Positions 2,540-53,700 of a stretch of 64,000 nucleotides of DNA are shown piece by piece. Under the pieces are notes generated by a model that searched no databases, was not told the DNA's origin, and saw only the letters and a program-made list of their open reading frames with translations. This DNA comes from Botryllus schlosseri (taxonomy: Eukaryota): contig CM119386.1 in assembly GCA_051294905.1 (NCBI GenBank), forward strand, positions 806,001 through 870,000, read 5' to 3'. The position numbers were made by a program, and so were the translations under genes. The first letter of the stretch is position 1; each line of letters begins with the position of its first letter.

Positions 2540-2733
2540 TCACCGGAACGATCCATTGGTAGAACCACCGGCGGATACATCGTCGTAACGTTTCCGGCTT
2601 CCCGATTCGCCCATGTCCAAGTTTGTTTTTCCTTGGCGTTTCTTCTTGTATTGAACGAAGCATAGCACCCCGATCGCAATAATCAAGATCACAGCCAACA
2701 CACCGAGAACCACCCCCGCGATTGCACCTCCAT
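2540..2733 (-). CDS. Terminal exon: transmembrane helix plus ~37-aa cytoplasmic tail
   Basis: Acceptor TTTCTAG, phase 1. Translates (D)GGAIAGVVLGVLAVILIIAIGVLCFVQYKKKRQG...RYDDVSAGGSTNGSFR*: a 24-aa hydrophobic helix followed by a KKKR stop-transfer. TGA at 2540-2542. Confidence 0.88.
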
Positions 2734-8700: not shown

Positions 8701-11700
8701 GGGAGTAACTGTTGTGCTACCGGTGGTAGATTCAGAAGCTTGGCCTGTAGTACGTGGGACGGATGCACTACGTATGTTAGATTCAGTTGCTAGACTTGAA
8801 GAGGCAGTTGGCACAGATGTATTACCCATCCTAGATTTGTTAGCATGACCAGATGTAGTAGCTAGATCAGTTGTAGAATCAGTAGTTTGGTCTGAATTAG
8901 TAGCCGGTGTAATAACTGTGACAGATGCTGTAGCTTCACCAGAAGTAATAGCTAGATCCAATGTAGTAACAGCAGTTATCCGCACTTCATTAGTTTGACC
9001 TAAAGTAGCAACTGGGTTTGATGTGATACCAGCGATATATCTAGCATGTTGATCTGACGTAGTACGTGGATCAATTGTAGTACCAGTAGAGTCAGTTGGA
9101 CCGGGAGTAGTAGCTGGGTTTGATGTAATGCCAGTGACCGATTCAATTGCTTGACCTGCAGTAGTAGCCCGAGAAGATACATCTCCAGTTGTAGATTCAG
9201 CAGCCTGTCTCGAAGTATTAGTTAGGTCGGATGTAATGCCAATGGTAGAATCAGTTGATTTTCCCGAAGTAGTAACTGAATTTGTTATAGTGCCAATGAT
9301 AAATTCACTAGCTACACTGGTAGTAGCTGGGTGGGATGTGCCCCCAGTGGTAGATTCAGTTGTTTGATCTGCAGTAGTAACTGAATCTGTTGCAGTAACA
9401 GTGGCATATTCAGTAGTTTTGCCTGAAGTAGCAACTGGGTCAGATGTAATAATAGTGGTAGATAAAGCCGCTTGGCTGGTTGTAGCTGAGTCTGATATAT
9501 TACGCGTAGTAGATTCAGTAGCTTGACTAGATGTGGTAGCCAGATCTGTTGTAGTATCAGTGATAGATTGAATAGTTTTACCAGAATTAGTCGTTGAGTC
9601 TGATATAATTCCAGTGTCAGATTCAGTAGCTTGACCAGAAGTAGCAGTCAGATCCATGTTAGTATCAGCAGTAGATTCAATACTTTGACCTGAACTAGTA
9701 GCTGAATTTGATGTAATACCAGTGATAAATCGAGCATGTTGGCCGGACGTACTATCAAGATTTGTTCTAGTGCCAGCGGTAGACTCTGTAATTGGACCTG
9801 AAGTCGTAGCAGGGGCTGATTTAATATCAGTGACAAATTCAGTTGCTTGATCTGAAGTAGTAGCAACAGTAGTAGCTTCAGAAGTTCGACCTGAACTTGT
9901 AGCTGACTCTGCTGTAATAGCAGCTGTAGCTTGACCAGAAGTAATAGACATATCCATTGAACTATCAGCAGTTATCAGTACTTCATTAGTTTGACTTAAA
10001 GTAGTAACTGGGTTTGCTGTGATGCCAGCGATAAATCTAGCATGTTGATCTGGCGTAGTACGTGGATCAATTGTAGTACCAGTAGACTCAGTCATTGGAC
10101 CTGGAGTAGTAGCTGGGGCTGACGTAATGCCAATGACAGATTCAGTTGCTTGACCTGCAGTAGTAGCTCCAGCAGATACACCTTCAGTTGTAGATTGAGC
10201 AGCCTGCCCCGAAGTATTAGTTAGGTCGGATGTAGTGCCAGTGGTATGATGGGTAGTTTTTCCTGAAGTAGTAACTGAATTCGCTGTGGTACCAACGGTA
10301 GAATCAGTAGCTTCACTGGTAGCAACTGGGTCGAATGTGTTCCCAATGGTAGATTCAGTAGTTTTATCTATAGTAGTAACTGGGACAGATGTACTGATAA
10401 CGGCAGAGTCCGCCACTTGACCGGTTGTAGCTGAGTCTGATGTATTACCAGTGGTAGATTCAGTAGCTTGAGCAGAATTAGTCATTGAGTCTGATGTAAT
10501 GCCAGTGACATATTCCGTAGCTTGACCAGCAGCAGCAGTTCGATCCATCTTAGTATAAGCAGTAGATTCGATAGTTTGATCTGAGCTAGTAGCTTGATTT
10601 GATGTAATACCAGCAATATATCGAGCACGTTGGCCCAACGTAGTACCTAGATTTGTTCTAGCAGTAGACTCGGTAATTGGACCTGAAGTCGTAGCAGGGG
10701 CTGATTTAATATCAGTGACGGATTTTATTTCTTGACCTGATGTAGCAGATACATACATTGCAGTAGTTTGACCAGTGGTAGATTTAGCCGCTTGACCTGA
10801 CGTAGTAGCTGGATCTGTTGTAGTACCGTCGTTAAAGTCAGTAACTGGGCCTGAAGTAGTAGCCGGGGCTGAAGTGTCACCAGTGGTAGTTTCAGTATGT
10901 CGACTTAAACTAGTAGCTAGATTTGATGATGAAGTCCTAATGGTTGCAGTGACAATTTCAGTGAAGAGAATTGGTATAGTGTTCGTATAAAGTGTCTGTG
11001 ATGTTGAATTTGACAGTGCAAAGTTATTTTTTTCCGTCGTTTTCATTGTTATGTAATTAGTAAAAGCCATCACACCATCCGTTGAACTCGATACACCTGA
11101 CCAAGACATCATTCAACAGCAAATATTAACAACCTTCAACAGCAAATATTAGAAGAACTCCAAACAGTAAAGCCAGTAGAAAAATTAATATTCATCACAA
11201 TACCCCGATATATAACATATTCATTGTCAATCAGTCGTATAAATTGCCATAATTAGTCTCCCTCACACAGAAAATACAGGTCTACTTATCATATCGACAA
11301 AAGAACGCTTCAAATCTATAAGACATCATGTTCTGAAATTTGTGGTGAATGATGCGTAATCTAAATTTATAAAAACAACAAAATTCAACATTCTTACATA
11401 TCAGAGGCATGTCATCCAGAGAATTGTACTTCCCATTGAGAGAGAGTGCATGTTGTACAAAAATAAAACTAAATGTAAAATATGCAACTCGCTACCGACA
11501 CTTCAAATTGATTATTTTCTTGGATCAATCAATTTTTATACAAATCTACTGTTATAACTAGGGCTGGACAAATTCGAGTACTTGAGAGATTCTGAATTGA
11601 GTTTAAACAGTACCGTATGAATGGAAGAATATAATGGCGTTTCTACATCAGATTCAAGATGATTTGGTATTTCCACGGCCATGCCTATTTCATTGCACTT

Positions 11701-26700: not shown

Positions 26701-29700
26701 TTGAAGTGCAAGTAATGAGACGCATGAAAAATATTCAAGTTACTATGGTCTAAGCTCCATATTTTTTTAGCAACTCCGCGACTAATACAATATGAGTAAT
26801 AACATGACAAACCGGTACAATATTTGAAAATATATTCAGCAGTTACTGCCGTGGCTATTTCATGCGGTTCATATCATGACGGTTTCTATCATAAATCTGT
26901 TGCAAACTTGGATCAGAGCTACTTTCCAAAATCCTAAGTGTAAAATGAAGTATTATTTTCGTATAGTAGTGAAAGTTGTCTCAAACTTGAGTAAGCAGTG
27001 CAAGTAGATCAAACCTACTTGAGTACTTTGAAAAAGTTAGATCATCGGAAATGTTGAAAGTTTCATAGTCATAACCACTTGAATAATTAGTATAACCCTA
27101 CTAGCAGTTCTTACTGACCACCTCTTATAAAAAATATTTTTAAGCTGTTTGGTTCATATTACCGTACAATCCTTTTGCCTTTCCAATTTGAGAAGTTGAC
27201 GATGATACCAGAGGTACCAGTGTCTTCGGAGAGGCCCTGATGTCCAGTTGATAGTCCTGGCCGATCATGAGCAGGACGCCGTCGTTTTTACTTCGGAGTG
27301 AAGAGATTACGATGCTTCCAAAAGTTAAGTCTAAAGTATAAGTTGAATTCGGTTGCTATTAGGGCTAAACGCAATGATTCAAGCAGGATTGTAATTAACC
27401 TTGGTCATGGGAAATGACTTGACTCAAGGCAATTTGTGTATTGACTAAATTTGCACAAGTCACATGACTCGAGACTCGGACGGCCCAGACAGGCATTTTA
27501 TGATTCTGAAGAATAGTATGTTACCACACTATTGGTATTTCGTCTATCAGTACTGGTGTTTGTAAATTAGGACCAGAAACTTTTGAAAGTGGAAAATTTA
27601 CTATATTATCAATGCGGGGCATTCGATATCATCCGGAGCTGTAAAAAAATGAGTCGCACACAGGGTTTCAACTCAAAACTGAACATTCAACCAGCTGACT
27701 CGGACTGGAACGTTTGAACCCTGACTTGAACTCGGACTTGACTCGGTGAATTGAAAATGACTCAACTTAACCCGAGTCAAAACTATATAAGTAGCATTGA
27801 CGTCTGACTCGGGACCTTGTGACTTGGTTACAACCAAGGATTTGAGTACTGAAATCCCAGTAAAGTAAGCTATCAAGCAAATCAGTCAATTGGTAGTTAT
27901 GTACCAGAAATGAAACGGATTACCTCTTTGTGACAGCAACGTTGCGTTCTCAATTCGGCTTCCGTTAACCAAGATGGTCATGTTTCTGATATCGGCATCA
28001 CTCTGTCCGTACGCATGTTGTATCTCAACCGTGGTTGGGCTGCCTAAAACAGATCGAACAGAATGATCAAAACAACTCCATAACTACGCTAAACAACAAG
28101 GGTAGTTGGCGCAGTGGTTATATCCACTATCATGGCACTTGAGGTACCTGGTTCGATTCTTGGCAGGAGACCATTTTGAGGCATCAGAGGTTCACATTTA
28201 CATATATAGAGCAGCCGTTCAGAGTTTATATGCTAAGAAAACGATGTGTTATTGTGCTCGGTAATGATAGAAAAAAAACTAAAAGGATAGATTTTATTTT
28301 TAAAAATCAATCATGATTCATGATTTGCGACAAGCCCGAAGTAATAAGACCTAACCAGAATTCTGCCAAAATATTATATTTTTGTATTGATGTTGAAATT
28401 AGCCCGAATAGTTTCGGCTGACAATCATCAGGGGTTATTGTCAGCAACTGGTAGCTAATTGGAAAGAACATTGTATATCAACAATCGTATCATAATGAGT
28501 TTAAGCGACGTCATATTTGATGAAACGATTGTTGATATGCTTACAATTACCCCTGACGAGTGTCAGCCGAAAAAATATTCGGGATTTATTTCAATATGAA
28601 TATACTTTTCAACCTAATTTTTTCATCTGAATAAATATATCTATGAAATAAACAATTGCTATTATGTAAGAGAATATACATCGATAGCGATACGTATTTT
28701 TGTAGAGTGTCTACTGTCTATATACAATGTAAATACCAGCATATGTAATATGATAAAAGCACGAAACTCACTTGATCCAAAATCACGAATGGCCATTCCT
28801 CTCAGTACAGACCCTCGAATAAGATTATTATCGACATCCGTGGATTGAACGAGTCTTCCCTAAAATAAATGAATGCCAGTCACATGCATGACCGAAGAAG
28901 GTATAAAACCAGCACAAAAATCAGCAAGCATAAATGTATGGATAATGACAATACTTGGATCGATATGGAGTCGGTCTTTATCAGATGGTATTCTCCAACC
29001 GCCGAGAACGAGTAACTGTTGCCGTCCCATGTTTGGAAAGTAGGATCCCCAATTGTAGCTAAAAAAGTGAAAGGTTTTTTGTTACTGACATCATCTGTAT
29101 ATCAATAATTCTAAAAATCACGATCGTCACTACTTAGTATTTCAAAGTTTATGATTCATATCTCATGACTAGGGCGATTTTTTTGACCTACTAACGGAAG
29201 ATTTTGCTCTAAAAAATCAAAATTTTCGCACATAGTGTTAAAATTGTACTACTAATCTTCATTTTTGGTTGGAACTGTATGTCCTTACGCAATAATTTGG
29301 CCGGAAAACATGTTTTTGGCCTAAAAACTGACCAACTAGTATTTTAACGAAATCTGGTCCTATGAAGAATTCCAGTAGTTACATCACATATTATAGTAGA
29401 AATAATTTAAATTTGTTGTAGTACAACGAAAGATCTACATCACAATTATTCATCATGCACTTCTTCATGAAAGAACCATGCAATGCCCACGCAGCCTTGC
29501 TTCAGTTAGCATATTGCGGTGACCAATGACCATAACACTATGTAAACCTATTTGTTTCATTTGACCGTTCATGATTCACAGGGAGCAGACAATGGACCTT
29601 CTTCAAAGGTAGGCCTATAAACTAGGCTACAAGCTGTAAAATGTCAAATGAAAAGTTCAACGACAGTGCAAAATCTACAATACAAACAAAATGCAGAGGT

Positions 29701-32700: not shown

Positions 32701-35700
32701 ACATGAAAGAACTTTATTTTAACATTACGCATTATCGTAGAAATAATTTTAAAAAATTTGTAGTACAACAAAAGATACTTTCCCACATTCTCGGGTAAAA
32801 ATTGTCTGTCCTTACTAAGTAGCTTGCCAAGAACGGAGAAAGAACGTTCAATAGCAGCAGCTGTTTGCTGACAACACTCAAGTTGTGCGTACACTGCCGG
32901 TGACAAACCGTGTTGCTTCTTGACATAAGAACCATGTAATGCCCACGCAGTCTTTCTTCAGTTAGGATATTGCAGTACGTTGAGCATAACACCATGTCAA
33001 CCTATTTGTTTCGTTTGAATGTTTATGATTCACAATGAGCCGACAATGGGCCGTCTACAACGGTAGGCCTATAAACTAGGTTACAAGCTGTAAAATGTCA
33101 AATGATAAGTTCACCGACAGTGCAACCATCTACGATACAAACGAAATGCAGGTTGCAAAAAAGTTTTAACTTTGTAAAAAAATTTGACATTTTTTGACCT
33201 AATTTTGACTTTTTTGACATGTCAAAAAAATTCGCCCTACTAATCAGCGATATCACTGTTAGGTCATCGAGTCAGCTGGTGATGTTGTACAGTGGGGTTG
33301 TTTCAAAATATTTTTTTTTCAGATTCCGGAAATTGATTGATTAAATTGTTAGGTTGCCTGAAAAACGTTGTACACCAAATTTGGCCCGATTCCAACAGGT
33401 AGATGTAAACGCACAGTTTCAAATTTTAGAATTTATTATAGAATTTTTTTTTCAAATTATACGGTCAACCCCATGAAATTGCCGAGTTGTCTACAAAGAA
33501 GATGCAAAAACCAGATTTAACATATTTCCAAGTTGTTTGAGTTTTTCATTCATAATTCTTGGATTACCCACAGTCCAGGCTATCTTTGCGAATCCAAAAT
33601 TTTCAACTGCAGCAACTACGCTTCTACCGATTAGGATTGAGCAAAAATTGGTAAGCATCATTCTTTTAGACAACGTAACAATACGATGTGGTTGACGGTA
33701 AAATTTTTAATTTTTATTTTCAATAAATTCAAAATATTCAATCCTCGGAATTCGTTTAAAAGAACCTACAGCACCTGAATACAAAATATCTTAGTTGATA
33801 AGATAATATTCATTTGTAAGTAGCAAACAAATTCAGTAGGCCTGTATTATTAGGTGCGATTGTGCATTCATAACCAACCGGACTAGCTTCCAAAATGGGT
33901 TGTTGTTCGGCCCACTGTCTGCAGTAGAGATCCACGTTCATTCCCTGGCCTGTCAGGTTACCGAGCATATATCCGAATACTCCGAGCTTGCCTGAAAAAT
34001 TAACGACCATTACTGTAAAATCTTGAAATAACAACAGCTAAAATGGCCCAAACTGGGTCCAGTGATTTCAGAATGAGTTAGCATGTCAGCAACGAAATAT
34101 CCACAAGGGTTACTTGGAAATTTCGATAAACTTGTAAAATATAGTTCTAGTTCTAGTTGCAGATTTTGAAAAGTGAGTAGTAGTAGTTCTAGTTCCTAGT
34201 TTTGAAAATGAGTGGTTCTAGTTCTAGTTGCAGATTTTGGAAAGTGAACAGCTCTAGTTCTAGTTCTAGTTAGGCATTTTGAAAAGTGATTAGTTCGAAT
34301 TTTAGTTGCACATTTTGAAATGTCAGTAGTTGTAGTTGCGAGTTGAAAAAAGAGTAGTTCTAGTTCTATCTCTAGTTGCACATTTTGAAATGTGAGTAGT
34401 TCTAGTTGTAGTTGCGAGTTTTGAAAATCCAGCAGTCTGTGCAAGTCTGGCTAAACTTGCCTGCGTTGGTGAAGTTGTCAGGGCGCATTGGGTCATCAAT
34501 GGCAATGCTAGATTGCTTCTCGAATGTCGAAGTCCAGCCCATCAAGGGCTCGAAATTGGGCAAGCGAATTCCGTGTTGCGCCTGCATTCCTTCCAGTTCG
34601 AACAGGAAGAAAGCGTATGTCACAGAACCGTCGGTCGTGAGCACCAGTTGGAATGTGTCATCCTGAAAAACATATGAAGACATCACTATTTTTCGTCATT
34701 TTTGTTAGTTAACCTAAATTTTCAAGAACTACAAACTAATTACAGCAAAATGCTTGTAATCTAATTTTAATCTAATTTGTGAAGTATTTTGCTCCAATTC
34801 TATTTCTATTTCGAACCTAATTTGTGAGATGTATTTATGTTCCAATCTAATTTCTGGATTTCCTGAAAATGCCACAGGTGAACTGTACTGTGTGAAACGA
34901 GCCAATCATGCCGTGTACAGACATTTGCTGTTATTATGCTTATGAGAATGGTCTCTGATTTGACATAAACTGAGCTTCATTCAATGTTCAATTTGCGAAT
35001 TCTGTAATTCTAATTCTAAATTGGGAAAAAAATGAGTAGCTATAATTCTGATTGTTATATAACTTGGGAAAATATGTATTTATTTGTCTGATTCTAGTGT
35101 AATTTGGAAAAAAAAACTGTGTAGTAATAACTCTAATTCTAATCATATTTGGAAAAGCTGGAAATTTTCTGTGTAAGACGGACGGCCATGTCTACGCTTT
35201 GACGACTATGTTACATCTAGCCTCGCATCTTTACCATGCTCATCAGCATATCACATTTTACGGAATTGCATTTTTATGTATGTTATCCTTTGACAAATAA
35301 AGATTCTCTCTCCCTCTCTCTTTAATTTGATGCCCATCGTAATTGCGACTTCACAATACCTGTGACGTAGGTCTGGCTTGGAACGTTACTTTCGCCACCA
35401 TGTTCTCCCAAGTAATCGTGATAGCTTCGACGGCTGAGTAGTCTCCGTTGCCCATGTAAGTCGCGACCAACTGGTTGATTTCATCGATCCGCTTCCGCTG
35501 ATAGAAACCTTGAAATAAATCACATTAATATTGACGTTGGGTTAAGCGTAAACGAATTATATCTTTAATTAAAATTTATTAGGGAGGTTCGGTCATTGTG
35601 ATAAAAAAAAACACAAAAAAGAATATACAGTCCAAAATATTCGGGTTGATTTCAATATGAATATATTATTCACTTCAATATACGAGATTAGAAATGGAAT

Positions 35701-38700: not shown

Positions 38701-41700
38701 TATATGACTTGGCAAATCTCTGCTATTAAAGATTTAAATTTATCCTTACGTGTCAAACAACGAGGTCCCGAGAATCCTTCATCGCAGGCGCACATTACAT
38801 GTCCAATATTATCTGTCGAACAAAGTCCCCGGCCATTGCATGTTGCATTGGAGCACTGTTCCACCACGCAGCATTTTCTGGACGTAATATATGCTGTAGT
38901 AGCTTTGTAATGATAGGTATCACACGATTTTACTCACGGAGACAACGCCGATTGCACATAACCAGTGCGGCAAGCACATGACTGTACAACATCATTGTTT
39001 TCAATTTGAATCGAACATATCTAGAAAGAAATGAAATTTTGATAAACTGTATTCATAATGAATTTCAATGCTCTCTTAACATGAATAAACCACATACCCA
39101 AAGCTATATGAATCAGACATGTGTCGTACAAACTACCGATCTAATTAGTAGACAGTCAACTAACTAGTGTCTTTTTTAAAATAGTTCTAGTTCTAGCTCT
39201 AGTTGCGTATTTTGAAAAGTGACTAGTGAATCTATTCAGTTATGTTATGTGAGTTACTTTTGGAATTTGAAAGGTCTTTAGTCATAGTTTTAGTTGCTAG
39301 TTTTGAAAACTGAGTAGTTTTAGTTCTAGTTGCAGTCGCACACTTTGAAAATCCAATAGTTTGTACCAGTCTGGTATCAAATATCCTTATTCTTTAAAGA
39401 GTCTGCTGAAACTTCAATTTGGCCAAGAAATTCGTGCGAAAATTACCTGCTGGCATCCATATTCAGAACACGAAGGCGTGCTTGCAACACAGACATCAAG
39501 CTGTGCCGATTGGTCGAATCCATCATTACAACGACATCGCTTCGACAAAGTCGCGTCAAGATAGCACACAGAGTCGGAGTTGCAGTATAGCTGATCGTCG
39601 CATGGATTCGTTGCTGGAATCGAAAATAATGCAATGTTATTTTAGAAAGATTGGTCATTCTTTGTGGTAGGATAAAATTATATGTATCGAGTTTCCACAT
39701 CATTTATACCGTTATGTTGTCATAATGAGTGGCTCTCAAATACTCCACTCGAAGCCTAATACTCGATACACAATCAAATCACTCAGGTTTTGGTTTTGAC
39801 GAGCCATATTTATGAGGAACAACTTACGTTGGCACGATACACCGTCTTGTGAAAGTGAGAAACCATCTTCACAGCTACAGGTGAAGCCGTCTCTTGTGTT
39901 GGCGCACGTGTGAGAGCAATTGTGTTCTCCATGATTGCAGTGATCGAATACTGAAAATAAAATGATAGTACTCATTAACACAGACAGCCATGGGTTGAAA
40001 CATTGTTTAAAATGTGTAGCGTATGAAGAAATGAACCAGTTGGAGACTTAGAGCTATGATGTTTGAAGCAGAGTTGAAATAGAAACTAGCTTTTCGAAAT
40101 TAGACTGGAATTATAATTTTAGCAACACAGATTTTTTCCGAATTAGATTAAAATTACAATTACTGAATTTGCATGAACTTCGAAAATGAATTAAATTCCG
40201 AATTAGAAAGAAATACAACAAAAACTAGATTAGAATTAGATTTAGGCATTTTGCTCTTATTAGTCTAACTAGTCCAATACATTTTTCTAGAATTGTTTAG
40301 TTTCTAAAGTCTGGTTTGAAGACTTACCACAGTCAGTGCGTGGTGCCGCATTTCCAATGTCCGTATAGCCGCAATCGCATTCACAAATGTAACTGCCAAA
40401 AACGTTCATGCACTCTGCATTGGCGCCACATAGCCCTTCAGTTTCGCATTCATTGACATCTAATGCAATAAAATATCAAGTCAGTATGTGTTCCTTCAAA
40501 CCAACAAGCTAAAGCCCGGGTAGGTTCAAAGATTTGATTGAGCTAGAATTATATAGAGACTTCTTACACACCCAATGTCTTTAATCAACACACTGACACA
40601 TCTAGTTTATGGTTAAGAATAAATGCAAGCTGCTAATGCGACAAAAGTCAGTATACCAATATACTACATAGATTTACGCTACACATAGCATACATATATC
40701 ATGCAAAAATGAATGATCTCCAGAAATCATAAACTAAAATCATTGGATGAACTCGATGACGATAAGAGACAATACTATCAAAATTTAATATATAAATTAG
40801 GTAATTTGAAAAAATTATAAAAATTGCACCATGCTAGCAAAAATGTCTGTTAGTTGGCACGCGAAATAACTGTAAACATATTTTAAATAAATAACAATAA
40901 CATGTATAAATGGCTAGCCCTTATTCTGCTTTTGAATACCTTAAGCATCACCTGATATTTAAACACCCATTACTAGGTGGGCATGCAGCTATAAAATCGT
41001 TTTGACATGAGTCGGTTTGATTTTGTACAAACACTCTAGATTAGATGAATTACCATCGCTAGTAACCAACAACAGAGCATTGCTCAATGGACAATTTTAA
41101 CAATGCAGCAAGCTGCGTTAACTACAAATATTGCTTAACTAACACAAAATTCAAGCACTATACAACAAATCCAACTGGATCATCTATTATTTCAAGAGAC
41201 CCATTGAAATATGCCACGTCTGCAGCTACCAACTACAGAGTACGCAGGGCAACTAAAATCATTGCAATATCTTTCAGCATCAGATACCTTGACGCACAAT
41301 TGCATAATTAAATGAACCCGAATATTTTCGGCTGACACTAATAATTATTTTTCATCACTGTGCATTGGAGTGGACTTTAATCAAGTTTGTTGAGCTTAAA
41401 CTCTCAGTTTGCTTCGATTATTTATATTACCATTGATGTGACGTCGTATTTCGAGGTACGATTGTCAATAAACAATGCTCTATACAATACTCTACTAGTT
41501 GCGGGTCATCAACTGTGACGAGTGTCAGCCAAATGTATTCGGGTTTATTTCAATATGACTATGTTATATTTTATCCAGAAGCTTCACACATCCAAGATCG
41601 TCATCAAATACCTAGATATCTGACAAAAATTTTTGCTTCATTAGCGTTTGATTTGTTAAGCCGCATACAAACCAATTCCTGCCACTACTGCGTCATGCTC

Positions 41701-44700
41701 AGCAAATATATGATATGTAAAGCAACCTTGACAAAATCCTGACGTTTGTACGAGACCGGAATCGCATTCGCAGCTAAACGAGCCGGGCGTGTTCCTGCAG
41801 GTTGATCCCTGCGGGCATTGAGCACTTTGCGTTGCGCATTCGTCAATTTCGTGACAGGTTCCGTTCGTAAACCAGTATCCTTGATCGCAATCGCACGCAT
41901 AACTTTCCCCTAAAATTTGACATAAGCCGCTCTGTCCGCAGTTATCAGGGTTGCACGGTGATATGAGATCGCAATTCTGCCCGATTCGCCCCTCTTTGCA
42001 TTGACAAATATACTGGCCTCCTGGGATATTGATGCAATCCTCATTCGCTTGACAAGGCACGCTAGAACACGAGTCGAAAATGCAGTCGATACCATCACCG
42101 ATGTAATTTGTGTCGCATGCGCAGGAGTAACTGCCCACAGAGCTCGTGCAAACCGCATTTTGATTGCAAGGAAGTGAGAGGCATAGATCAATCTCAAAGC
42201 ATCCTTGCAGTCCGCCAGTATATCCTTGCGGACATGTACACTTGATCTGCCCGTTTTCAACGCTGCACGTTGCATTTACGCCGCAAGGATTATTATCGCA
42301 AGGCTGTACTTCTATGCAATCTCCATTTTGTCCTGCGATATATCCTTGCAGACAGGTGCATTCGTATGATCCAACTGCGTTGATGCAATTCGAGTTTGAT
42401 CCACAGGTACCGTTAAAGGCACATTCGTCTCTATCTATACATGCGTTTTCAGCTTGATCATTCACAAATCCTTCTTTACAGCGGCATACATAGCTTCCGA
42501 TTGTGTTGAAGCATGTTTCATTTTCACTGCAGATGTCAGAAATCTCCTGGCATTCATCGATGTCAAAGCAAGTAGTTCCAATAAGACGGAATCCAGAGTC
42601 ACAATTACATTCGTAGCTGCCATCTGTGTTGTTGCAAGAAGCGTTATCTTGACAAGGAGAGTCGAGGCATTCATTGACGTCAACACAAGAATCAATTCCA
42701 TTTCCAGAGAAACCTTGTTGGCAGCTGCAATACGTGATTTCATTGCTTACAAAGCAATCTGCTTCAGGCAGACACGGGTTAGCAACTTGGCACGGGTCGA
42801 CAGGAATACAAAATCCGTTAATCTCTCTGTAAGCTCCGTCACAAACGCATTGATACGACCCAGGTTGGTTTTCACATCTGTAATTTCCGTCGCATGGTGC
42901 TGACAAGCATTCATTGATATCCACGCATATATCTGTGTTATTACTAGGTTGGTATCCGTCAATACATTGGCACGTATAACTACCAGCATTGTCAACACAT
43001 ACTGCAAAATTTCCGCATATGCCTTCAGTAGCGCATTCATTAATGTTTCGACAGTTTTCACCTGTATAACCAGCATCGCATACACACTCATACGATCCGA
43101 ATTTTTCGTTGCAATCAGCATTTAGCGGGCATGGATTATTGTCACATTCCGGTATATCGATACATGTGTTATTTGTATATTGCAATCCCGCTGCACATTG
43201 GCAAGTACTAGAATTTCCAGAGGCTACGCATTGAGACAGCTGAGGGCAAGTGGTGCTAGCGCATGGATCAACACTCGTGCACACTTCACCATTACCAAAG
43301 AATCCTTGATCGCAGATACATTCAGATCCTCCGTAAGTGTTGTAACATCGCGCGTTATCGCTGCACAGCGCTGGTCTGATTACCACTGTTCTGCCCTGGT
43401 AGGTCACGTTACACTCATTTCCACACGATTCTCTTGATATAGAAACGTTGTCCCACGAGATAGTATTCAGGATCAGGTTAACGGCATTTTGACCTGCACA
43501 CTCATTGAAGTCTACGCATGAAGTAATGCCGTCTCCTAATAAGCCGCTTTGACACTGACATTGACGAATTTCAGGTCCATTGCTGTCACGTCTTACAAAT
43601 ACGCATTCTGCCCCATTATCCAAGCATACATCGTTTCCGCAAAGTGCTGTAAAGAAAAGAAAAAGTTGTAACATGAAACTATCAGCTTTGGGAATCAGTT
43701 AATTGGTGATGTAACGGTGAAATCTGTACAGAGCAATTGTGTTTCAATCTTCGAAAACGCGATCCAGGTGTTATTTTGCAGGTTTTTCACATTAAATCTT
43801 GATGGCAAGACTGGCAAAAATAAAAAATAAAATTGGTTCGGCGTCGGCAAGGTCAAACTTGATATATTTTTGTCAAAAAATTTTGATGACTTGGATGACA
43901 TGAGACTCAACTGAGAGTCACTATGTTTGTCTTGATAATGATTGAATGTTGGTTGAATACAGATCAGCGTCCTAGAAAGATACTAAATTGCAGTGTTTGG
44001 GATGTATTTTATTATAAATGAAATTAGAGGCAATGAAACTAATCAGTATTGGAGATGACTATTTTAACCACCTTGGCGCTCTGCATTACCGAGAGAGCAT
44101 GGAGCAGTGATGCAAGACTTAGAAATCCTTACAAGGATATTTCTGCACCTTCCTTGTCCAGCGCCATATGCATATCACGCACTCATGGTATACATATGTA
44201 CAGATCGTGTGTCTGTATACCATGAGTTGATGTCATACCGCAAAAAAAATTGAAGACAAAAATATACAACGTTCTATTCTACTTTTAAAGCTAACCACCC
44301 ATTTATTTATTTATCTTACTTACTAAAGCTACGAGAATTATTACCTTTGCATGTGTTGGCGACATATATGAATCCAGCTTCACATTGGCAAAAGAACGCC
44401 CCATCTGTGTTCTCACATGTAGATGTTGGGCCGCACACAGCATTCTGCCCGGCACACTCATCAATATCTTCGCATGTGCCGTTCGTGAATTCATATCCTT
44501 GCGCACAATCGCAGGCGTAAGTCTCTCCCTGTATTTGACAAACTCCGTTCTGTCCACAGTTGTCTGGGTTGCACGGTGTGATCGGATCGCAATTCTGTCC
44601 GAACCTGCCTTCCTTGCACTGGCAGACGAACTGACCTTGGAAAGTTAAGCAATCTTCATTCTGTCCGCAAGGATCGGTGGTGCACCAGTCGAAATCACAG

Positions 44701-47700
44701 GTAATTCCGTCTCCGGTATAGTTTGTGTTGCATGTGCAGAAGTAGCTGCCAACCGTGTTGGTACAGACGGCATTGTTACGATCGCACGGGAAGGTAAAGC
44801 ATTCGTTGATATCAAAGCAGTCTTGGAAACCGCCCGCAAACCCTTCAGGGCAAGTACATATGGTCTGTCCGTTCTCAACACTGCATGTTGCATTTGCACC
44901 GCACGGATTATTATCACAAGGTTGTACTTCAATGCAATCTCCATTTTGTCCTGCGGTATATCCTTGCAAACATGTGCATTGATACGAACCGGGTGTGTTT
45001 ATGCAGTTAGAGTTTGCTCCACATGTACCATTGAATGCACATTCATCCTTATCTATGCAAGCATTAAGGATTTGATCATGCACGAATCCTTCTTTACAAT
45101 TGCACACAAAGCTTCCGAGCGCGTTGAGGCATGTTTCGTTTACACTGCAAGTATCAGTAGATTCTTGGCATTCGTTGATGTCAAAACAAGCTGTTCCTAA
45201 CAGACGGAATCCAGAATTGCAGTTACATTCGTAGCTACCATCTGTGTTGACACAAGACGCGTCATTTTGACACGGTGAGTTTAGGCATTCGTTAATGTCG
45301 AAACAGGAATCAATTCCATTTCCAAGGTAACCTTGTGGGCAGCTGCAGTACGTAATCTCGTTGCTTACAAAGCAATCCGCTTCGGGGAGACACGGGTTAG
45401 CAACTTGGCACGGATCAACTGGAATACAGAATCCATTAATCTCTCTGTAAGCTCCGTCACAAATGCATTGATACGATCCAGGTTGGTTTTCGCATCTGTA
45501 ATTTCCGTCACATGGTGAAGATGAGCATTCGTCGATATCTTCGCATATACTGGCATTGTTGCTAGGTTGATACCCGGAGATACATTGGCACGTGTAACTC
45601 CCAACAGTGTCCAGGCATGTCGCAAAATTACCGCATATTCCTTGCGTCGCGCATTCATTCGTGTTTAAGCAGTTTTCACCTGAATAGCCCTCCTGGCAAC
45701 GACACACATATGAGCCGAATGTGTCGACGCAATCAGCATTTTGTTGGCACGGATTATTGTCACATTCCAGAATGTCGATGCATGAATTGTTTTGATATTG
45801 CAATCCAGAAGCACATTTGCACGTTGCCAGCCCGTCTGTTTGATCGCAGAAGGCTAGTTGCGGACAGGTTATGTTTTCACAAGGATCAACTTGAGCACAA
45901 ATTTCACCATTGCCAAAGAATCCGTTATCGCATACGCATTCAAACCCTCCGTAAGTGTTGTAGCAACGTGCGTCGCTATCACACTGTGATGGTCTGACAA
46001 GCGCTGTTCTTCCGTTATATGTTACGTTACATTCACTTCCACATAATTGCCGGGTGACAGACACGTTTTCCCACGAAATAGACTCCAATACAATGTTGAC
46101 GGTAGTTTGACCGGTGCATTCGTTGAAGTCAGTGCACCATGTCACGCCATCTCCAACTGTACCACGTTGGCATTCGCACGCTCGTATTCCCACACCGTTT
46201 TGATCAATTCCTTTCAGCACACATTCAGCACTGTTTGCGAGACAGATGTCGTTTCCACAAAGCTCTGAAATAGGAAATGAAATTTAATGGTACTAATTCC
46301 TTGTATATATGATAAGAATTGAATAATATATTCCTATTGAAGTAATAGAGGTAATCGCGAGCGACTAGCAGAGAATTAGAAAGATCAAGTTCAATTTTAT
46401 ATTGACGTTGTGTACTACAATAGTCCCCAGAATCCGGCAAAAAGTTATTTTTGAACAACACTTAAGACCACCTCTGGACTTACTTCCCCACATTTTATGA
46501 AAGGATTACCCCAATTATTGCATAGCCAATTTGAAAAGTGATGACGTCTTGAAATAGGATGGAAAGTTTTAATCAAATCGACAGCTCAAACCTACCTTTG
46601 CAAGATCCATCCATTTCAGCGAAACCGAGATTGCATCTGCATGAGAACGAGCCTTGCGTATTCTCACAGTTAGAGTTTGGCGGGCACACAGCATCTTGTC
46701 CACTACATTCGTCGATATCTTCGCAGGTTCCATCGGTAAACCAATATCCTTGGTCACAATCGCAAGTGTATGACGTTCCTTCTATACGACAAATGCCGTT
46801 GAGTCCGCAATTATCTGGATTGCACGGAGTGATCGGGGCGCAATTATCTCCAATCCGTCCCTCTTTGCATTGACAGGTGTATTGTCCATTTGCCATATTG
46901 ATGCAGTCTTCGTTTGCTGTACACGGGCTGCTCGAACATGAGTCAAAGTCGCATGTCTCCCCATTTCCGATAAAGTTTTCGTTACATGCGCAGAAGTAAC
47001 TGCCGATTGTATTTGTGCAGTTAGCGTTTATATCACACGGAAAATCACGGCACTCGTTGATATCTGTGCATTCTTGGACGCCACCGCTGTATCCATCGGG
47101 ACAAGTACACCTGATTTGACCATTTTCAACGGAACATGTAGCGGTTGCACTGCATGGGTTTCCGTCGCATGGTAATACCTCTATACAGCCTCCATTTCCG
47201 TCATCTCTGTAATCTTGTGAGCATGTGCATTGGTATGACCCAGGTGTGTTATCACATTCCGCGTTAGCTCCACAAGTGCCGTTAAAAGCGCATTCGTTCC
47301 TATCGACGCAATCGTTTTGACTTTGACTTGTGACATATCCGTCTTTGCAGTTGCATGTAAAGCTTCCGATTGTGTTTAAGCAGTATTGTGTTGTAGTGCA
47401 ATCGTGGGAGCCCGTTTCGCACTCATTGATATCATTACATTCACCTCCAAATGAGAAAAATCCGGGATTACATTCGCACGTAAAACTGCCAGGTATATTT
47501 GTACAGTCAGCATTATTTGGACATGGTGATGAACTACATTCATCCACATCGGTACACGAATCTTTTCCGTTACCAGTAAATCCAGTAGGGCATATGCAGA
47601 ATGTATCATTGTGTGACACAACACATTCAGCTTGCTGTAAGCAAGGATTCACATCACGGCACGCATCGACTGGCACACAATCTTGATTGATTTCCCTGAA

Positions 47701-50700
47701 TATACCATCGCACACGCATTGATAACTGCCAGGTTCATTTTGACATCTGTAGTTTCCTGAACATGGGGACAACAACTGACATTCATCGATATCTTCACAT
47801 ATATCGGCATTTCCACTTGAAAAATACCCGTCCAAACATTGACATCTGTAACTTCCCGCAGTGTCTTGGCATCTTGCAAATTGTCCGCATATGTCGAAGT
47901 CTACACATTCGTCGATATTTTCGCAATTTTCCCCGGCAAAACCTCGATCGCAAGTGCAAAGATACGAGCCATACGTTTCGGTACAGTTGGAATTATCAGG
48001 ACACGGACTGGTTTGACATTCTTGTACGTCAACGCATGCACCGTTAAAATACCGTAGTCCTGGCGCACATTCACAAGTCGATACTCCTTGGTTTACGACA
48101 CAGATTGCGAATTGAGGACAGGTAATGTCTTGGCATGGATCCACAATGGAGCATATTTCGCCATCACCAAAGAAGCCTTCTTCGCATACGCATTCAGACC
48201 CTCCGAATGTATTGTAACAACGTGCGTTGTCACTGCATCTTGCCGGTGTGATTAACGCTGTTCTTCCGTTATACGTTATTATGCATTCGTTTCCGCATGA
48301 TTCTCTCGATATTGTGACATTTTCCCATGAAATGGATTCAAGCACAAAGTTGTTAGTGTTTCCACCGGTACATTCATTGAAGTCTAAGCACCATGTAACA
48401 CCGTCTCCAACAACACCATCAATGCATTGGCATCTATGAATCTGTTTTCCGTCGTTGTCATATCCTTGCGATACGCATTCAGCCACGTTGGCAAGACATC
48501 TGTCATCTCCGCATAGTTCTTTTAAAAACACAATTTTCAATATGAAGATTCATAGTTTCACGGATATCATGAATGAAAACTGACAACATTCATATACCAT
48601 TTGCACACCGAAGTGATTTGAAAATGAAAAGCAGTTGAATGGTAATGATGTGACAAAATTAAGACATAGCAAGATTGTAAGTGGTGCAAAATGTTATAAC
48701 GCATTATCAAGTTATTACTTGTAAACAGATGCGTGATCAAAAATGTTATTAGGTATTAAGAGCACAACTAAGGCCTACTGGTCAATCCAAGCAATAAAAC
48801 TATGTAGAAATCTCACAAACACATTTTAGTACGCTCACCATGTAATGATATTTTATCAATAAATAATTATTACTGGTTAATCCACACTGTAAAACTATGT
48901 AATCGGTAAAAAAGATGTTCAATGAAATCCCACAGACTGATTTTAGTACTCACACCAAGTTACATGTATTATAATAATATGATTATTAATAGTATTAACT
49001 GAAGACAGGAAAGCATCAAGTACAGTGCAGTGTGCACAATGCAAACATCTAAATTAACCACTGATCAAGCTGGAATATCCACGATAACCTACCAAAGTTG
49101 CACACCCAAAACTTGGCTTCAAGTATACCAGGGTCGATGTGTATTTACATCACACACAATTAAGGCAACTGGCACACACAAGGAATAGTACTCGCACAGT
49201 CAAGCGGTTACAAGAATTTTCAATTCCCCACATGAGAATTCTTTTGATTCTCCAACCATGGAATACAGTATTGGCAATGTTCTCAAACATACCCATCCAA
49301 AAGTGACATCATTAATATATTTACCTAAATATATATTACACGGTATAGACTGGGAGACCCGATATAACCGAAATCTTCAAGGCCGGAGTCATTCAAGTAT
49401 ATTTGGCGGTAATAATAATAATAATCAATTTCTTCCCTCATTGAAGTAGCAGAGCAAAAAGTGAGGAACCAAAACAAAATTAAACAAAGCAGAACAATAC
49501 TAATGAAGGAAAGAAAACTTGACAGGTTAAATAATTTATTACTTGAAGATCTTGTGTCAAATGCATAGCTGGTCAGTATGGAAGCGCTTCTAGTGCTTAC
49601 AAGAGTGCACCCAAGAATTTTGTTTCCTTCAGGCAAGCTACACCCTTTCCATTTATCAAGCAACATTTGCAACACTCACAAATACGAAATACCATTCATC
49701 CGCTCACACTCACAACATTACTCCCAAACAGCCATCAACAATAAGATAACCGTAATAGGAGACTCACCTGTGCAAACCCCGTCTACCTCTCTGAAACCAG
49801 GACTGCATTCACAGAAGTACGAGCCATCTGTGTTTCGGCAGGTTGCTCCAGGACCACACACCGCATTCTGTCCGTTGCATTCATTGATATCGCTGCATGT
49901 ACCGTTCGTGAACCAATAGCCTTGCTCGCAGTCGCACGCATAAGTTGTTCCCAATATCTGGCATATTCCGTTTGGCTCGCAAAAATTTGGGTTGCAAGGT
50001 GTGATAGTGTCGCAGTTATCTCCGTACCGTCCTGTCTTACATTGACACCTGTGCTGTCCGCCTATGATGTTGAAACAGTCTTCATTCTGTGTGCATGGGT
50101 TGGTTGAACAGGAATTGAAATCGCAGTTAAATCCGTCCCCGCTGTAGTTTTCTCTGCATGTGCAAGTGTATGTACCAGGAGAATTAACGCAATCGGCGTT
50201 GACATCACAGGGGAAGTTGAGACATTCGTTGATATCTGTACATTCTTGTATACCCCCTGTATATCCTTCACTGCATGTACACTTAGTCTGGCCGTTTTCC
50301 ACAGTGCATGTCGCGTCTGCGCTACAAGGATCATTATCGCATGGTAAAACTTCCACACAGATTCCATTATCATTTTCTTTGAAGCCATCCTTACAGCTAC
50401 ACCCGAAATTTCCAACCGTATTGGTACACAGCGAATTCTCCCCACAGACACCAAACACAGCGCATTCGTCTGTATCAATGCAGTCTTTACGGTCGTTGCT
50501 GTATTCAAATCCTGCTTTGCAGTTGCAGAGAAAGCTTCCGGGTGTGTTTAAACATGTTTGGTTTGAAGAGCAATCGTCAATACGCCTTTCGCACTCAGGT
50601 ATATCTCTGCATTGTCCTTGAATGAGTTCATATCCGGTATTGCATTCACAAGAGTAACTTCCATCCGTGTTTGTACACTGTGAGTTTTGTGGGCATGGAG

Positions 50701-53700
50701 AAGTTTGTAAGCATTCGTTGATATCAGTGCAATTGTCTCTTCCGTTGCCAGTATAACCCTCAGGACACAGACACACTGCGTCATCGTCAGCAACCACGCA
50801 TTCCGCTTCTTGAAGACATACTTCTGCGTCGTCACACGGTTGTACTTTTACACATTGATCGTCAATCATACGGAATTCACCGTCGCATATACATTCGTAG
50901 CTGCCTGGATTGTTTTCACATCTGTAATTCACACCACATACTGGAGACGTGCATTCATTGATATCTTCACACTGATTTCCGATTTTGCGGTATCCCGAGT
51001 TACATTCGCATATGTAACTTCCTTCCGTGTCCTTGCAAGTCGCATCATTTCCGCAAATTGTCGGGTTCAAACATTCATTTATGTTTACGCAGTCATCACC
51101 AAAGTATCCTTCAAGGCAGGCGCAACGGAACGAGCCGAATATTTCATCGCATTTCGCATTGGCTGGACAAGGATTGGTTTTGCATTCTTCAACGTCGATG
51201 CATGTGTTGTTGGAGTATCGCAGTCCGTTTGCGCATTCACAAATCGCAGATCCTCCCGTCCTTACGCATTGAGAAAGGTCTGGACAAGTTATCGCACTGC
51301 AAGGGTCGGTTTCAGTACATATTTCTCCATCCCCGTAGAATCCACTGATGCATGAGCATTCATATCCACCGTACTCGTTCAAGCATATCGCGTTATCACT
51401 GCAGTTTGCCGTTCTGACGGCAGCTGTTTGTCCGTTGTAAGTGATATTGCATTCACTGCCACACATTTCTCTTGACATGGAGACGTTTTCCGATGAGACA
51501 GTGTCCAGCACCAAGTTCAGCATGTTGAGACCGGAGCATTCGTTAAAATCAATGCACCAGTTAACACCGTCACCGATGGTGCCGTCCAGACAGTGACAGC
51601 TTTCGATTTTCTCTGCTTTCATATCATCGTATACAGAAATGCACTCAGCTTTGCTTGCTAGGCAGATGTCTTCACCACACAGTTCTGTAATGATACATGC
51701 GCTGTTGGTAATCAGAAGCATATTCTCAATGTATTCTAACACGAATTTGTAAAGCCTCAATGCTGTTAGTATATAATTAGGCAGTATGTTCATATTGAAA
51801 TAAACAGGAATAATCGTGAGCATGCTCTTAATATGATGTGTGGCATGATTACAGAGGCTTTTGAAGTAGTTGACAGTGATACTTGGTCAAAATAAATGTA
51901 ACGCCCAAATATTCTAGTCGATTTCAAGTGGAAGTACTGATTTCCGAGACATATCAAAATTTCTTCAATTGGAAGTAGCGCAAAACCTAATAAATACTAT
52001 GAAAAAGTAGAAATACTTCATTACTGACCACGTCTGGCCACTAAGGAGGTTCAAAAGGAACAGAACATTTTTAGTTTAAGGTAATAAAGACACCAAATGT
52101 TATGAAACTTTACAGTGATCCATTGATCCATCACTGACTTGTCGCTTTAACTTATTTCAATTAGTATTATTATTTCGATTTCAGTTACATATTGTAATCC
52201 TCTCAATGCAAGGAATTCCCGATACTTGGAGAGTGGAAAAAATGGTGGTGATGGTGATGATAAAGCATATTATATTGCTTGCACCAGACACTAACAAGCT
52301 CATTCGTTCTTTGAATCTAGATATACCTTTACAGAATCCATCCACATCACGGGAACCTTCAGGACAGTCACAAAAGAACGATCCTTCCGTGTTGAAGCAT
52401 TCATGATCGGACACGTTGCATTGTACAAACTTGCACTCGTCAATATCTGAGTTGATTTAAGAGTCAAATTCAATTCGATAATCAAAAACTGCAGTATGGC
52501 ACTTACCCTCGCATTCGAAAGTGATATCGCTGTATTGAAAGCCATCTGAGCAGTTCAAGGTCTAAACATGAAACGTTTACGTATCATTGAACTTGGTAGT
52601 AACTTGTAACTGTAAAGAATTGACCCAAAACTCTCCTTTTAATTCTAAACTAATTCCTGGTTTTCCTGAAAATGCTACTGGAGAGCTGCATAGTGCGAAA
52701 CGAGCCAAGTTCGCTGGGCAGACATTTCCCATTCTCGTGCTTATTTAAATAGATTCTGATTTCTTATGGAGTGAACTTGATTTTTGTTGTATTTCTTCCT
52801 AATTCGGAATTGAATTCAATTTCCAAGGTTTTCAGAATTATATAGTTCTAATTCTATTCTAATTTAGAAAATACTGTGTGGCTATGAAGCTAATTCTAAT
52901 CCAATTTCAAAACTTGAGCGTTTTAGTTGTCCAAATGTGATATTTATTTCTATACATCTTGTTTTGCTTTGTGTATCACTGAGTAAAAGCGATACAATTT
53001 ATATCTACCATCAGACACATAGGTTTGAATTCAGACTTACGCGGTTGGAGTCGGGAGCCACAGGTGGCGGTGGCGGTATGATAGTTGGCGGAGGAGGCGG
53101 GGGACAGATTGTCGGCTTGGTTTCATTGATTTCAAATGTTGGTGGTGGCGGCGGAAGCACTGGTGGTGGCGGTGGCACCGGAATCGTGCCGTTCTGAATA
53201 TACGGGTTACAAACACATTACAATGTATTTAAAATTGCCTAGGTCCTAGGTCATTGCACAGCAGCTCTAATTAGATGTGATACCAGCATGTGTAAAGTTT
53301 GTTAAATACCAATACTGAAAAACACTTGCACAATACCTACGGTTAGACAAACATATTATAATCCATAAGACTGCAAACTAATGACTTGAATTTTGACAAA
53401 TTGAATTATTTTCAGCGAATTACACAAGTAGGTTTTGTCTACCCGCACTACTTTCTCATGTTGTTAAGCTACTACTTCCACGGCTACTTGATTATTTTTT
53501 TTAGGCAAAACTAGGCCTACAACACATACTTTTTACTTACTTTGAAAGTACTAATTCTGCTTGAACTCAAGTAAAAATTTTAGATGTTGCTCACAAACCA
53601 GGGATCACCAACACGCAGCACGCATGCAGCCAGTGGCCTGATTTTAGATCTTCGGAGAACACTTAGTAAAGCATTCATAAATGCTGAAATTGATTTCAGC

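Follow-up and report, generated by a model that had tools for sequence, protein, structure and literature searches.

Four consecutively spliced 15-EGF exons in a probable MUC4-like mucin gene of Botryllus schlosseri

The window analysed here is the whole 64,000-nucleotide stretch of the Botryllus schlosseri assembly, and its minus strand carries four large exons, designated blocks A to D in the order in which they are transcribed. Each block encodes 15 EGF modules without an internal intron. The blocks, the introns between them and the nearest exons on either side are as follows.

52327..52446, minus strand: upstream flanking exon with one EGF module, 120 bp, phase 1-1
49768..51684, minus strand: block A exon, 1917 bp, phase 1-1, 638 amino acids, 15 EGF modules, 92 Cys
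48519..49767, minus strand: intron A-B, 1249 bp, GT..AG
46596..48518, minus strand: block B exon, 1923 bp, phase 1-1, 640 amino acids, 15 EGF modules, 92 Cys
46265..46595, minus strand: intron B-C, 331 bp, GT..AG, spliced out in RNA
44345..46264, minus strand: block C exon, 1920 bp, phase 1-1, 639 amino acids, 15 EGF modules, 92 Cys
43647..44344, minus strand: intron C-D, 698 bp, GT..AG, spliced out in RNA, with a dispersed repeat at about 44100-44260
41727..43646, minus strand: block D exon, 1920 bp, phase 1-1, 639 amino acids, 15 EGF modules, 92 Cys
40328..40459, minus strand: downstream flanking exon with one calcium-binding EGF (cbEGF) module, 132 bp, phase 1-1

The exon and intron lengths had been proposed in an earlier reading made from the letters of the DNA (the sequence-only reading) and are exact, with a total span of 9958 bp. 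An AG acceptor and a GT donor border all four blocks. Each exon has a single open frame that begins after two bases and leaves one base over, which bears out the proposed phase 1-1 arrangement. The first codon base left at the donor is a G in all four cases. Donor strength differs between blocks, that of block D (GTTGCT) being weak. The neighbouring EGF modules are encoded one per exon (120, 132, 123 and 144 bp), all in phase 1-1. Thus, the description of the gene's other EGF exons as small (83-193 bp) holds for these neighbours of 120-144 bp, which are the exons that the check covered. The dispersed repeat in intron C-D has copies throughout the genome, and an Rfam search of positions 40400-52500 gave no match.

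Downstream of the blocks and on the same strand are several features that suggest the identity of the host gene.

34405-34695, minus strand: exon piece matching NIDO (PF06119), 26.9 bits, cut-off 25
73-amino-acid exon piece, minus strand: candidate VWD fragment (PF00094), 21.8 bits with the cut-off at 22.9, covering profile positions 4-41
6850-11112, minus strand: Ser/Thr-rich open frame of 1421 amino acids
2543-2788, minus strand: hydrophobic, membrane-spanning segment with a basic tail after it

Before the membrane anchor there is a weak SEA-like piece. Among the candidate exon pieces that separate NIDO from VWD, none gave a Pfam match to AMOP, in a scan whose sensitivity is low because only single exon pieces were used. 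The combination of domains indicates that the block exons probably encode part of the extracellular region of a giant MUC4-like transmembrane mucin. Based on shared strand and domain logic, the entire 64-kb minus-strand series would form one transcript.

The domain content of the blocks is remarkably uniform. The 92 Cys residues of each block correspond to 15 modules of six Cys each, plus two extra Cys that lie within a 44-residue loop in module 2. Module lengths are almost equal from block to block, and non-Cys identity is 45-68% at matching module positions versus 11-40% at differing positions. Since identity at matching positions exceeds that elsewhere, the one-to-one alignment of modules in the same order, as the sequence-only reading had it, is real. 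Pfam matches to EGF_CA, EGF_3 and cEGF have E values from 1e-26 to 1e-62; for block A the values are 3.5e-62 (EGF_3), 6.8e-62 (EGF_CA), 6.7e-36 (EGF) and 1.5e-30 (cEGF), and block D is similar. Of the 15 module positions, nine belong to the calcium-binding type and the other six do not. The consensus D/N-x-D/N-E/Q-C is present at these nine positions in most blocks and has been lost in module 12 of D, module 4 of both C and D, and module 9 of A. The modules also carry an Asn/Asp hydroxylation-type motif. Modelling of modules 1-3 with AlphaFold2 from an alignment of five rows gave a poor result (a mean pLDDT of 47, with residues 33-125 below 50).

The blocks are 56-71% identical, the closest pair being C and D (71% at the amino acid level), and their matches to one another in the genome (E values of 0 to 2.9e-236) are far beyond chance. 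Synonymous differences among the A, B and C pairs are saturated (pS of about 0.80), and C and D are separated by a dS of about 2 with a dN/dS of about 0.10. All 92 Cys are retained in every block, with no stop codons. Introns A-B, B-C and C-D share no similarity when compared, and none was seen among the intron flanks of the blocks. Judged from the saturated synonymous sites, the dissimilar introns and the low dN/dS of C and D, the block duplications are ancient. The RNA contigs contain 20 synonymous and 19 non-synonymous 'other letters', which we rejected as a measure of polymorphism because transcripts of block D can map onto block C at the 90% threshold.

There is only one outside relative among the sequences found. 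This sequence, P0005, is a 666-amino-acid read-through open reading frame with identical exon borders and the same 15 modules. The proposal to look for introns inside the block in relatives is thus answered for P0005, which lacks an internal intron. The tail of block B was used to look for a neighbouring 235-amino-acid open reading frame on the same contig, and nothing was found. In a tree of the four blocks and P0005, C and D are sisters (support 100/99), whereas the tree does not separate A, B and P0005 and thus gives no age for the block duplications relative to the divergence of that species. The protein search results include neither the protein itself nor full-length orthologues. The top outside matches are multi-EGF proteins of about 40% identity, one of them named LTBP1, and the 44-residue loop with its two extra Cys is found in 0 of the 149 other best-scoring proteins.

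RNA shows the block exons to be transcribed and joined in sequence, with A followed by B, C and D. The evidence comes from assembled RNA contigs, which report presence only and from which rare isoforms are dropped. The B-C joint (46264/46596, 'skips 331', CT..AC on the plus strand) is found in runs X15, X1 and X17, and the C-D joint (43646/44345, 'skips 698') in runs X15 and X1. These joints take up the entire local contig depth (94.1/94.1, 24/24 and 75.2/75.2). The A-B junction is present in a contig of one run, X1, with 28 of 29 bases matching. In runs X15, X1 and X17, exons are covered far more deeply than introns; for example, contig depth is 24-220 in block B, whereas bins of intron A-B that lie outside repeats have about 0-7. 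The words of block A are present at 0.77-0.86 in the same three runs. A raw-read run (X23, about 6% sampled) has 0 reads on the block exons, and all 1333 of its reads fall on the dispersed repeat of intron C-D.

Several other joints in the contigs were considered and set aside. A joint from 44476 to 47779 is non-canonical (TG..TG), out of frame and has a side of only 22 nt; it resembles a crossing between paralogues during assembly. Likewise, loose ends with matches in exon A (50727) and exon D (43255-43284), together with a 'goes back' joint, look like paralogous-EGF crossings rather than isoforms.

These observations are best explained if the four blocks are old tandem duplicates of one 15-EGF exon that had no introns before the copying began, and if they have been kept by selection and are included together. 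We consider this account likely to be correct, and with it the view that inclusion of all four blocks is the default isoform. The copied unit would have been an exon together with an intron. C and D would have split last, A and B would be older, and purifying selection would have retained all copies.

The origin of the ancestral 15-EGF exon is a separate matter. The sequence-only reading proposed that an intron-stripped or retro-copied block was duplicated in tandem. Tandem duplication of an intronless unit is upheld by the one-to-one match of the modules and by the fact that none of the 14 internal module borders carries an intron in any of the four copies. Nothing specific supports retro-copying. 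The same reading called intronless blocks anomalous, and this does not hold, because the genome contains other uninterrupted EGF arrays in open frames of 1267-4001 amino acids and the EGF-like repeats of tenascin all lie on one exon (PMC1578592). These many intronless cbEGF arrays could have been donors if the ancestral exon was a retro-copied or otherwise intronless array of another gene that was inserted into a phase-1 intron, and such an event would agree with the one-domain-per-exon layout retained by the flanking EGF modules. However, apart from the blocks themselves, the genome offers no match better than 44% over 359 amino acids, which is ordinary for Cys-rich EGF arrays. Neither the 44-residue loop nor the order of the 15 modules recurs in any of these matches, so a parent of the same module order was not found. 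In addition, the block borders fall exactly at canonical EGF phase-1 positions, as predicted by intron loss in place. We therefore regard insertion from another gene as unlikely. No hallmarks of a retro-copy came to notice, although traces such as a poly(A) remnant or a target-site duplication are not expected to survive, because dS is saturated.

A different possibility concerns the use of the blocks rather than their origin. Because each of the four exons is a multiple of 3 in length and has phase 1 at both borders, any subset of blocks can be spliced in frame, as had been claimed. The blocks might accordingly be cassette exons that are skipped variously by tissue or stage to give in-frame isoforms with 0-60 extra EGF modules, and hence a stalk of varying length or binding specificity. 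The shared donor base G means that every combination also leaves module borders intact, the donors are unequal in strength (that of block D being weak), and minor isoforms can escape assembled contigs. On the other hand, three RNA runs, each from a different study, contain no B-to-D skip joint, and the full local depth lies on the B-C and C-D joints there. No skip joint was accepted elsewhere, although the 6-kb stretch examined gives a full view for B to D only; skips from the exon A donor or involving the flanking exons would show up only as loose ends, of which a minority were listed. The lone other skip-type joint is the out-of-frame 44476 to 47779 joint described above. Moreover, EGF exons are as a rule symmetric in phase 1-1, and the small exons that flank the blocks, which look constitutive, are no exception. 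The in-frame potential thus stands and skipping itself was not seen, and we find the cassette arrangement doubtful. Fully independent use of the blocks by tissue or stage, by which a giant surface mucin could have as many as 16 in-frame isoforms, is in our estimation quite improbable. If cassette use did occur, stalk length would change in steps of 15 EGF modules, and which diverged copy is displayed, with its own glycosylated 44-residue loop, would differ.

Mutually exclusive use of one block per mRNA, as in Dscam-type clusters, was also suggested and has the tandem, nearly equal-sized paralogous exons in its favour, but it has virtually no chance of being correct and in its strict form is ruled out by the neighbour junctions, because A-B, B-C and C-D are directly joined in RNA contigs, introns of 331-1249 bp impose no steric block and have no common elements fit for docking or selector sites, the splice sites are all GT-AG, and joint inclusion preserves the reading frame.

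Overall, the pattern looks like ordinary exon duplication and not like a splicing switch. The four blocks contribute 60 EGF modules in all, or about 2,560 residues, to the protein. These modules may form a long, partly calcium-stiffened and N-glycosylated stalk or interaction platform, which would be located between the NIDO/VWD core and an N-terminal region of micro-exons that is rich in proline. Rods of cbEGF modules measure roughly 2.5-3 nm per module, and by these figures the extended stalk could reach the order of 150 nm.

The locus is a clean and datable example of the lengthening of an extracellular protein, wherein an intronless multi-domain exon has been copied three times and all copies retained under selection. 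It bears on thinking about intron loss in EGF arrays, and gene annotation in this genome gains from the RNA support for the 1.9-kb exons and for their borders. No new mechanism is opened: taken strictly, the idea of a splicing switch is contradicted, and its looser form, for which the B-to-D joint was fully covered, is unsupported.

Among known systems, MUC4 and the MUC4-like proteins (NIDO-AMOP-VWD mucins, including the 'mucin-like protein' of corals) resemble this locus, where a NIDO piece, a VWD fragment just below its cut-off, EGF modules, a Ser/Thr-rich exon of great length and a putative C-terminal anchor all lie on one strand. MUC4 is described as uniting NIDO, AMOP, vWD and EGF domains with a membrane anchor (PMC5354666, PMC4671926). 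In contrast, AMOP was not detected in the exon pieces scanned here, the Ser/Thr-rich region follows NIDO/VWD, a weak SEA-like piece lies before the anchor, and there are 60 EGF modules in the four blocks alone whereas MUC4 has few.

Dscam-type clusters likewise consist of tandem paralogous exons of the same size and phase. The blocks differ in that they are spliced to their neighbours, share no intronic elements and are 1.9 kb long rather than about 0.1-0.3 kb. Tenascin offers a closer parallel in gene structure, as its whole EGF-like array lies on a single exon while its other domains are split domain by domain (PMC1578592). There is one such exon in tenascin, without tandem duplication, and there are four here; moreover, the present gene encodes a mucin-like membrane protein in which no heptad or fibrinogen-related parts were seen. 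The repeats of tenascin are of the short tenascin type and are not known to carry a calcium-binding consensus.

Finally, the arrays of fibrillin, Notch and LTBP type, with one EGF module per exon, share with the blocks the calcium-binding consensus, the Asn/Asp hydroxylation-type motif and phase 1 borders. They differ from the arrangement described here, in which a loop of 44 residues within module 2 supplies two additional Cys, 14 consecutive module borders are intronless, and a 15-module unit is itself repeated four times as a super-repeat.

The four exons that each encode 15 EGF modules (blocks A to D, lettered in transcript order) are translated, spliced consecutively and selectively maintained, as our results show. 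They are arranged as follows:

49768-51684, minus strand, block A exon, 1917 bp
46596-48518, minus strand, block B exon, 1923 bp
44345-46264, minus strand, block C exon, 1920 bp
41727-43646, minus strand, block D exon, 1920 bp

The introns A-B, B-C and C-D are 1249, 331 and 698 bp long, and exons and introns sum to exactly 9958 bases. AG is present at all four acceptors and GT at all four donors, and each exon holds one open frame preceded by two bases and followed by one, which corresponds to phase 1-1. These borders and frames agree with the sizes and phase proposed in a sequence-only reading. The translated blocks are 638-640 amino acids long with 92 cysteines apiece, and their pairwise identity is 56-71%, C and D being the closest pair. 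They are the only full-length copies in the animal's own 495.5-Mb genome (E 0 to 2.9e-236); the best match after them has 44% identity over only 359 residues.

When the translations are cut after each sixth cysteine, with two extra cysteines permitted in module 2, there are 15 modules per block, whose lengths are near-equal across A-D. The Pfam domain types found are EGF_3, EGF_CA, EGF and cEGF (E 1e-26 to 1e-62). A calcium-binding EGF start is present at nine module positions (2, 4, 5, 6, 8, 9, 10, 12 and 15), most with a hydroxylation-type motif, and is absent from six (1, 3, 7, 11, 13 and 14). Non-cysteine identity between blocks is 45-68% at the same module position versus 11-40% at different positions. 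Thus, the modules match one-to-one, as had been proposed, and the 15-module unit predates block copying. Tandem duplication of this unit is supported by the collinear modules of all four copies.

Module 2 of every block contains a 44-residue loop between Cys1 and Cys2 of the calcium-binding EGF (~45984-46115 in block C, for example). The loop carries two extra cysteines and N-glycosylation sequons, which most copies retain, and AlphaFold2 gives no usable model for it (pLDDT ~31-39). Elsewhere, the calcium-binding start consensus is lost in single copies, namely in module 12 of D, module 4 of C and D, and module 9 of A; D module 12 has F-E-I-D-L-C in place of the D-I-N-E-C of the other blocks. 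These losses hint that calcium binding may have diverged between blocks.

Contigs assembled from three RNA runs of three studies (X15, X1 and X17) were placed on 43600-49599. Their depth is 20-270 on exons, compared with ~0-7 for introns A-B and C-D outside repeat bins and ~2-14 for intron B-C. Splicing out of the 331-bp intron (joint 46264/46596) is seen in all three runs at full local depth, and splicing out of the 698-bp intron (joint 43646/44345) in two; both joints have GT..AG ends on the minus strand. In a loose end of X1 at 48520, 28 of 29 bases agree with the 3' end of block A, and there is no match to the end of the small upstream one-EGF exon (52327-52446, minus strand). Junction A-B is therefore seen in a single run, B-C in all three and C-D in two of them, and 77-86% of the words sampled from exon A are present in these runs.

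These junctions contradict mutually exclusive splicing, which had been named as one use that symmetric exons would allow. Cassette skipping was named on the same grounds; none is observed, and we consider it improbable. There is no B-to-D joint in the contigs of the three runs over 43600-49599, a 6-kb stretch in which B to D is the one skip fully covered, and such contigs show presence rather than absence. Because phase 1-1 symmetry is ordinary for EGF exons, the in-frame property alone is no evidence of regulated skipping. Other odd joints and loose ends were rejected as isoforms. They are either non-canonical or map to the corresponding site in a paralogous block, a pattern that assembly of such similar EGF sequences would be expected to produce.

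Intron C-D includes a short dispersed repeat at 44100-44260, for which Rfam has no family. A first look gives at least 1875 candidate copies genome-wide, and the 40 that were scored are 83-88% identical. RNA contig depth spikes there to 250-1480, and the raw-read run X23 places all its reads on this repeat and none on the block exons. In intron A-B, contig depth is 25-112 at 49200-49599 and contigs have loose ends at 49317 and 49391; the source is probably a further repeat or else a separate small transcript.

Protein searches yield a single outside relative that covers the whole block. When 1.84 billion representative proteins were searched exhaustively and without a profile, 20,726 matched, and among the best 150 only P0005, a 666-amino-acid read-through ORF with 55-58% identity to each block, combines whole-block coverage with the 44-residue loop; the other 149 lack this loop. 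A word-indexed search of 5.8 billion proteins again finds P0005 as the sole relative. This ORF was called on a contig (4258 bp) from run SRR25569784. It enters the block from intron-like sequence and leaves it at the other end, and the codons at the two borders fit splice sites (AG acceptor, GT donor) at positions homologous to those of A-D. Introns inside the block, a feature that the sequence-only reading would have sought in orthologues, do not occur in P0005, which is uninterrupted as in A-D. The fixed intronless block is thus shared by at least one distant relative.

The four blocks are old duplicates kept intact. Synonymous differences among A, B and C/D are saturated (pS ~0.80; pN 0.25-0.30), and the C-D pair has dS ~2 and dN/dS ~0.10. 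No similarity beyond chance links the five introns that flank or separate the blocks. The blocks are not assembly duplicates. In a tree of A-D and P0005, C and D are sisters (support 100/99), and A, B and P0005 form a star without resolved branching. At codons 240-310 of C and D (~45335-45545 and ~42717-42927), DNA identity is 86-93% versus ~72% overall. Where C and D have the same residue there, they also use the same codon in 75% of cases, compared with 44-54% in the outer flanks. Both values are a mild sign of a later gene-conversion tract between these two youngest copies.

The intronless state had been called anomalous. This holds within the gene, whose neighbouring EGFs each have an exon of their own (120, 132, 123 and 144 bp, phase 1-1 throughout), but not within the genome, where open frames that match EGF without interruption extend for 1267, 1710, 1740, 2066, 3302, 3344 and 4001 amino acids at other loci. 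Long uninterrupted calcium-binding EGF arrays with near-identical 40-residue units are located as follows (L005, L007-L010):

G000:C10:3.14 Mb
G000:C10:2.35 Mb
G000:C10:17.86 and 18.04 Mb
G000:C9:7.46 and 7.81 Mb

Pieces examined from such loci are solid calcium-binding EGF arrays; one of 4095 bp, for instance, stays open over its full length and encodes 200 cysteines. Intronless EGF arrays thus recur in this genome. The retro-copy origin proposed earlier is unsupported. Since the genome contains no donor with the same module order and the block borders fall on canonical EGF phase-1 positions, intron loss in place is more economical than retro-copy insertion, with the data compatible with either. 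An ancestral 15-EGF exon probably lost its introns, or never had any, before duplication. Three exon-plus-intron duplications would then have followed, with C/D last.

Proline-rich micro-exons lie upstream of the blocks, and further one-EGF exons are found on the same strand within 2543-37720. Other features of this region are:

34405-34695, minus strand, NIDO piece (26.9 bits, cut-off 25)
28883-29101, minus strand, start of a VWD domain (21.8 bits, cut-off 22.9)
6850-11112, minus strand, 1421-amino-acid Ser/Thr-rich open frame
5035-5199, minus strand, weak SEA-like piece
2543-2788, minus strand, hydrophobic segment with basic tail (membrane anchor)

AMOP has no Pfam match on the candidate exon pieces between NIDO and VWD, which were scanned singly and hence with low sensitivity. 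A two-EGF open piece is located on the same strand 2.5 kb past the right edge of the window (G000:C16:872538-872996; L011:2538-2996, minus strand), and the start of the gene is therefore probably beyond the window. Blocks A-D together would add 60 EGF modules to the ectodomain, perhaps as an extended, partly calcium-stiffened and glycosylated stalk or binding platform. The one-EGF exons, NIDO piece, VWD start, Ser/Thr-rich frame, SEA-like piece and anchor suggest, if we infer a single transcript across the series, that the gene is best read as a giant MUC4-like transmembrane mucin.
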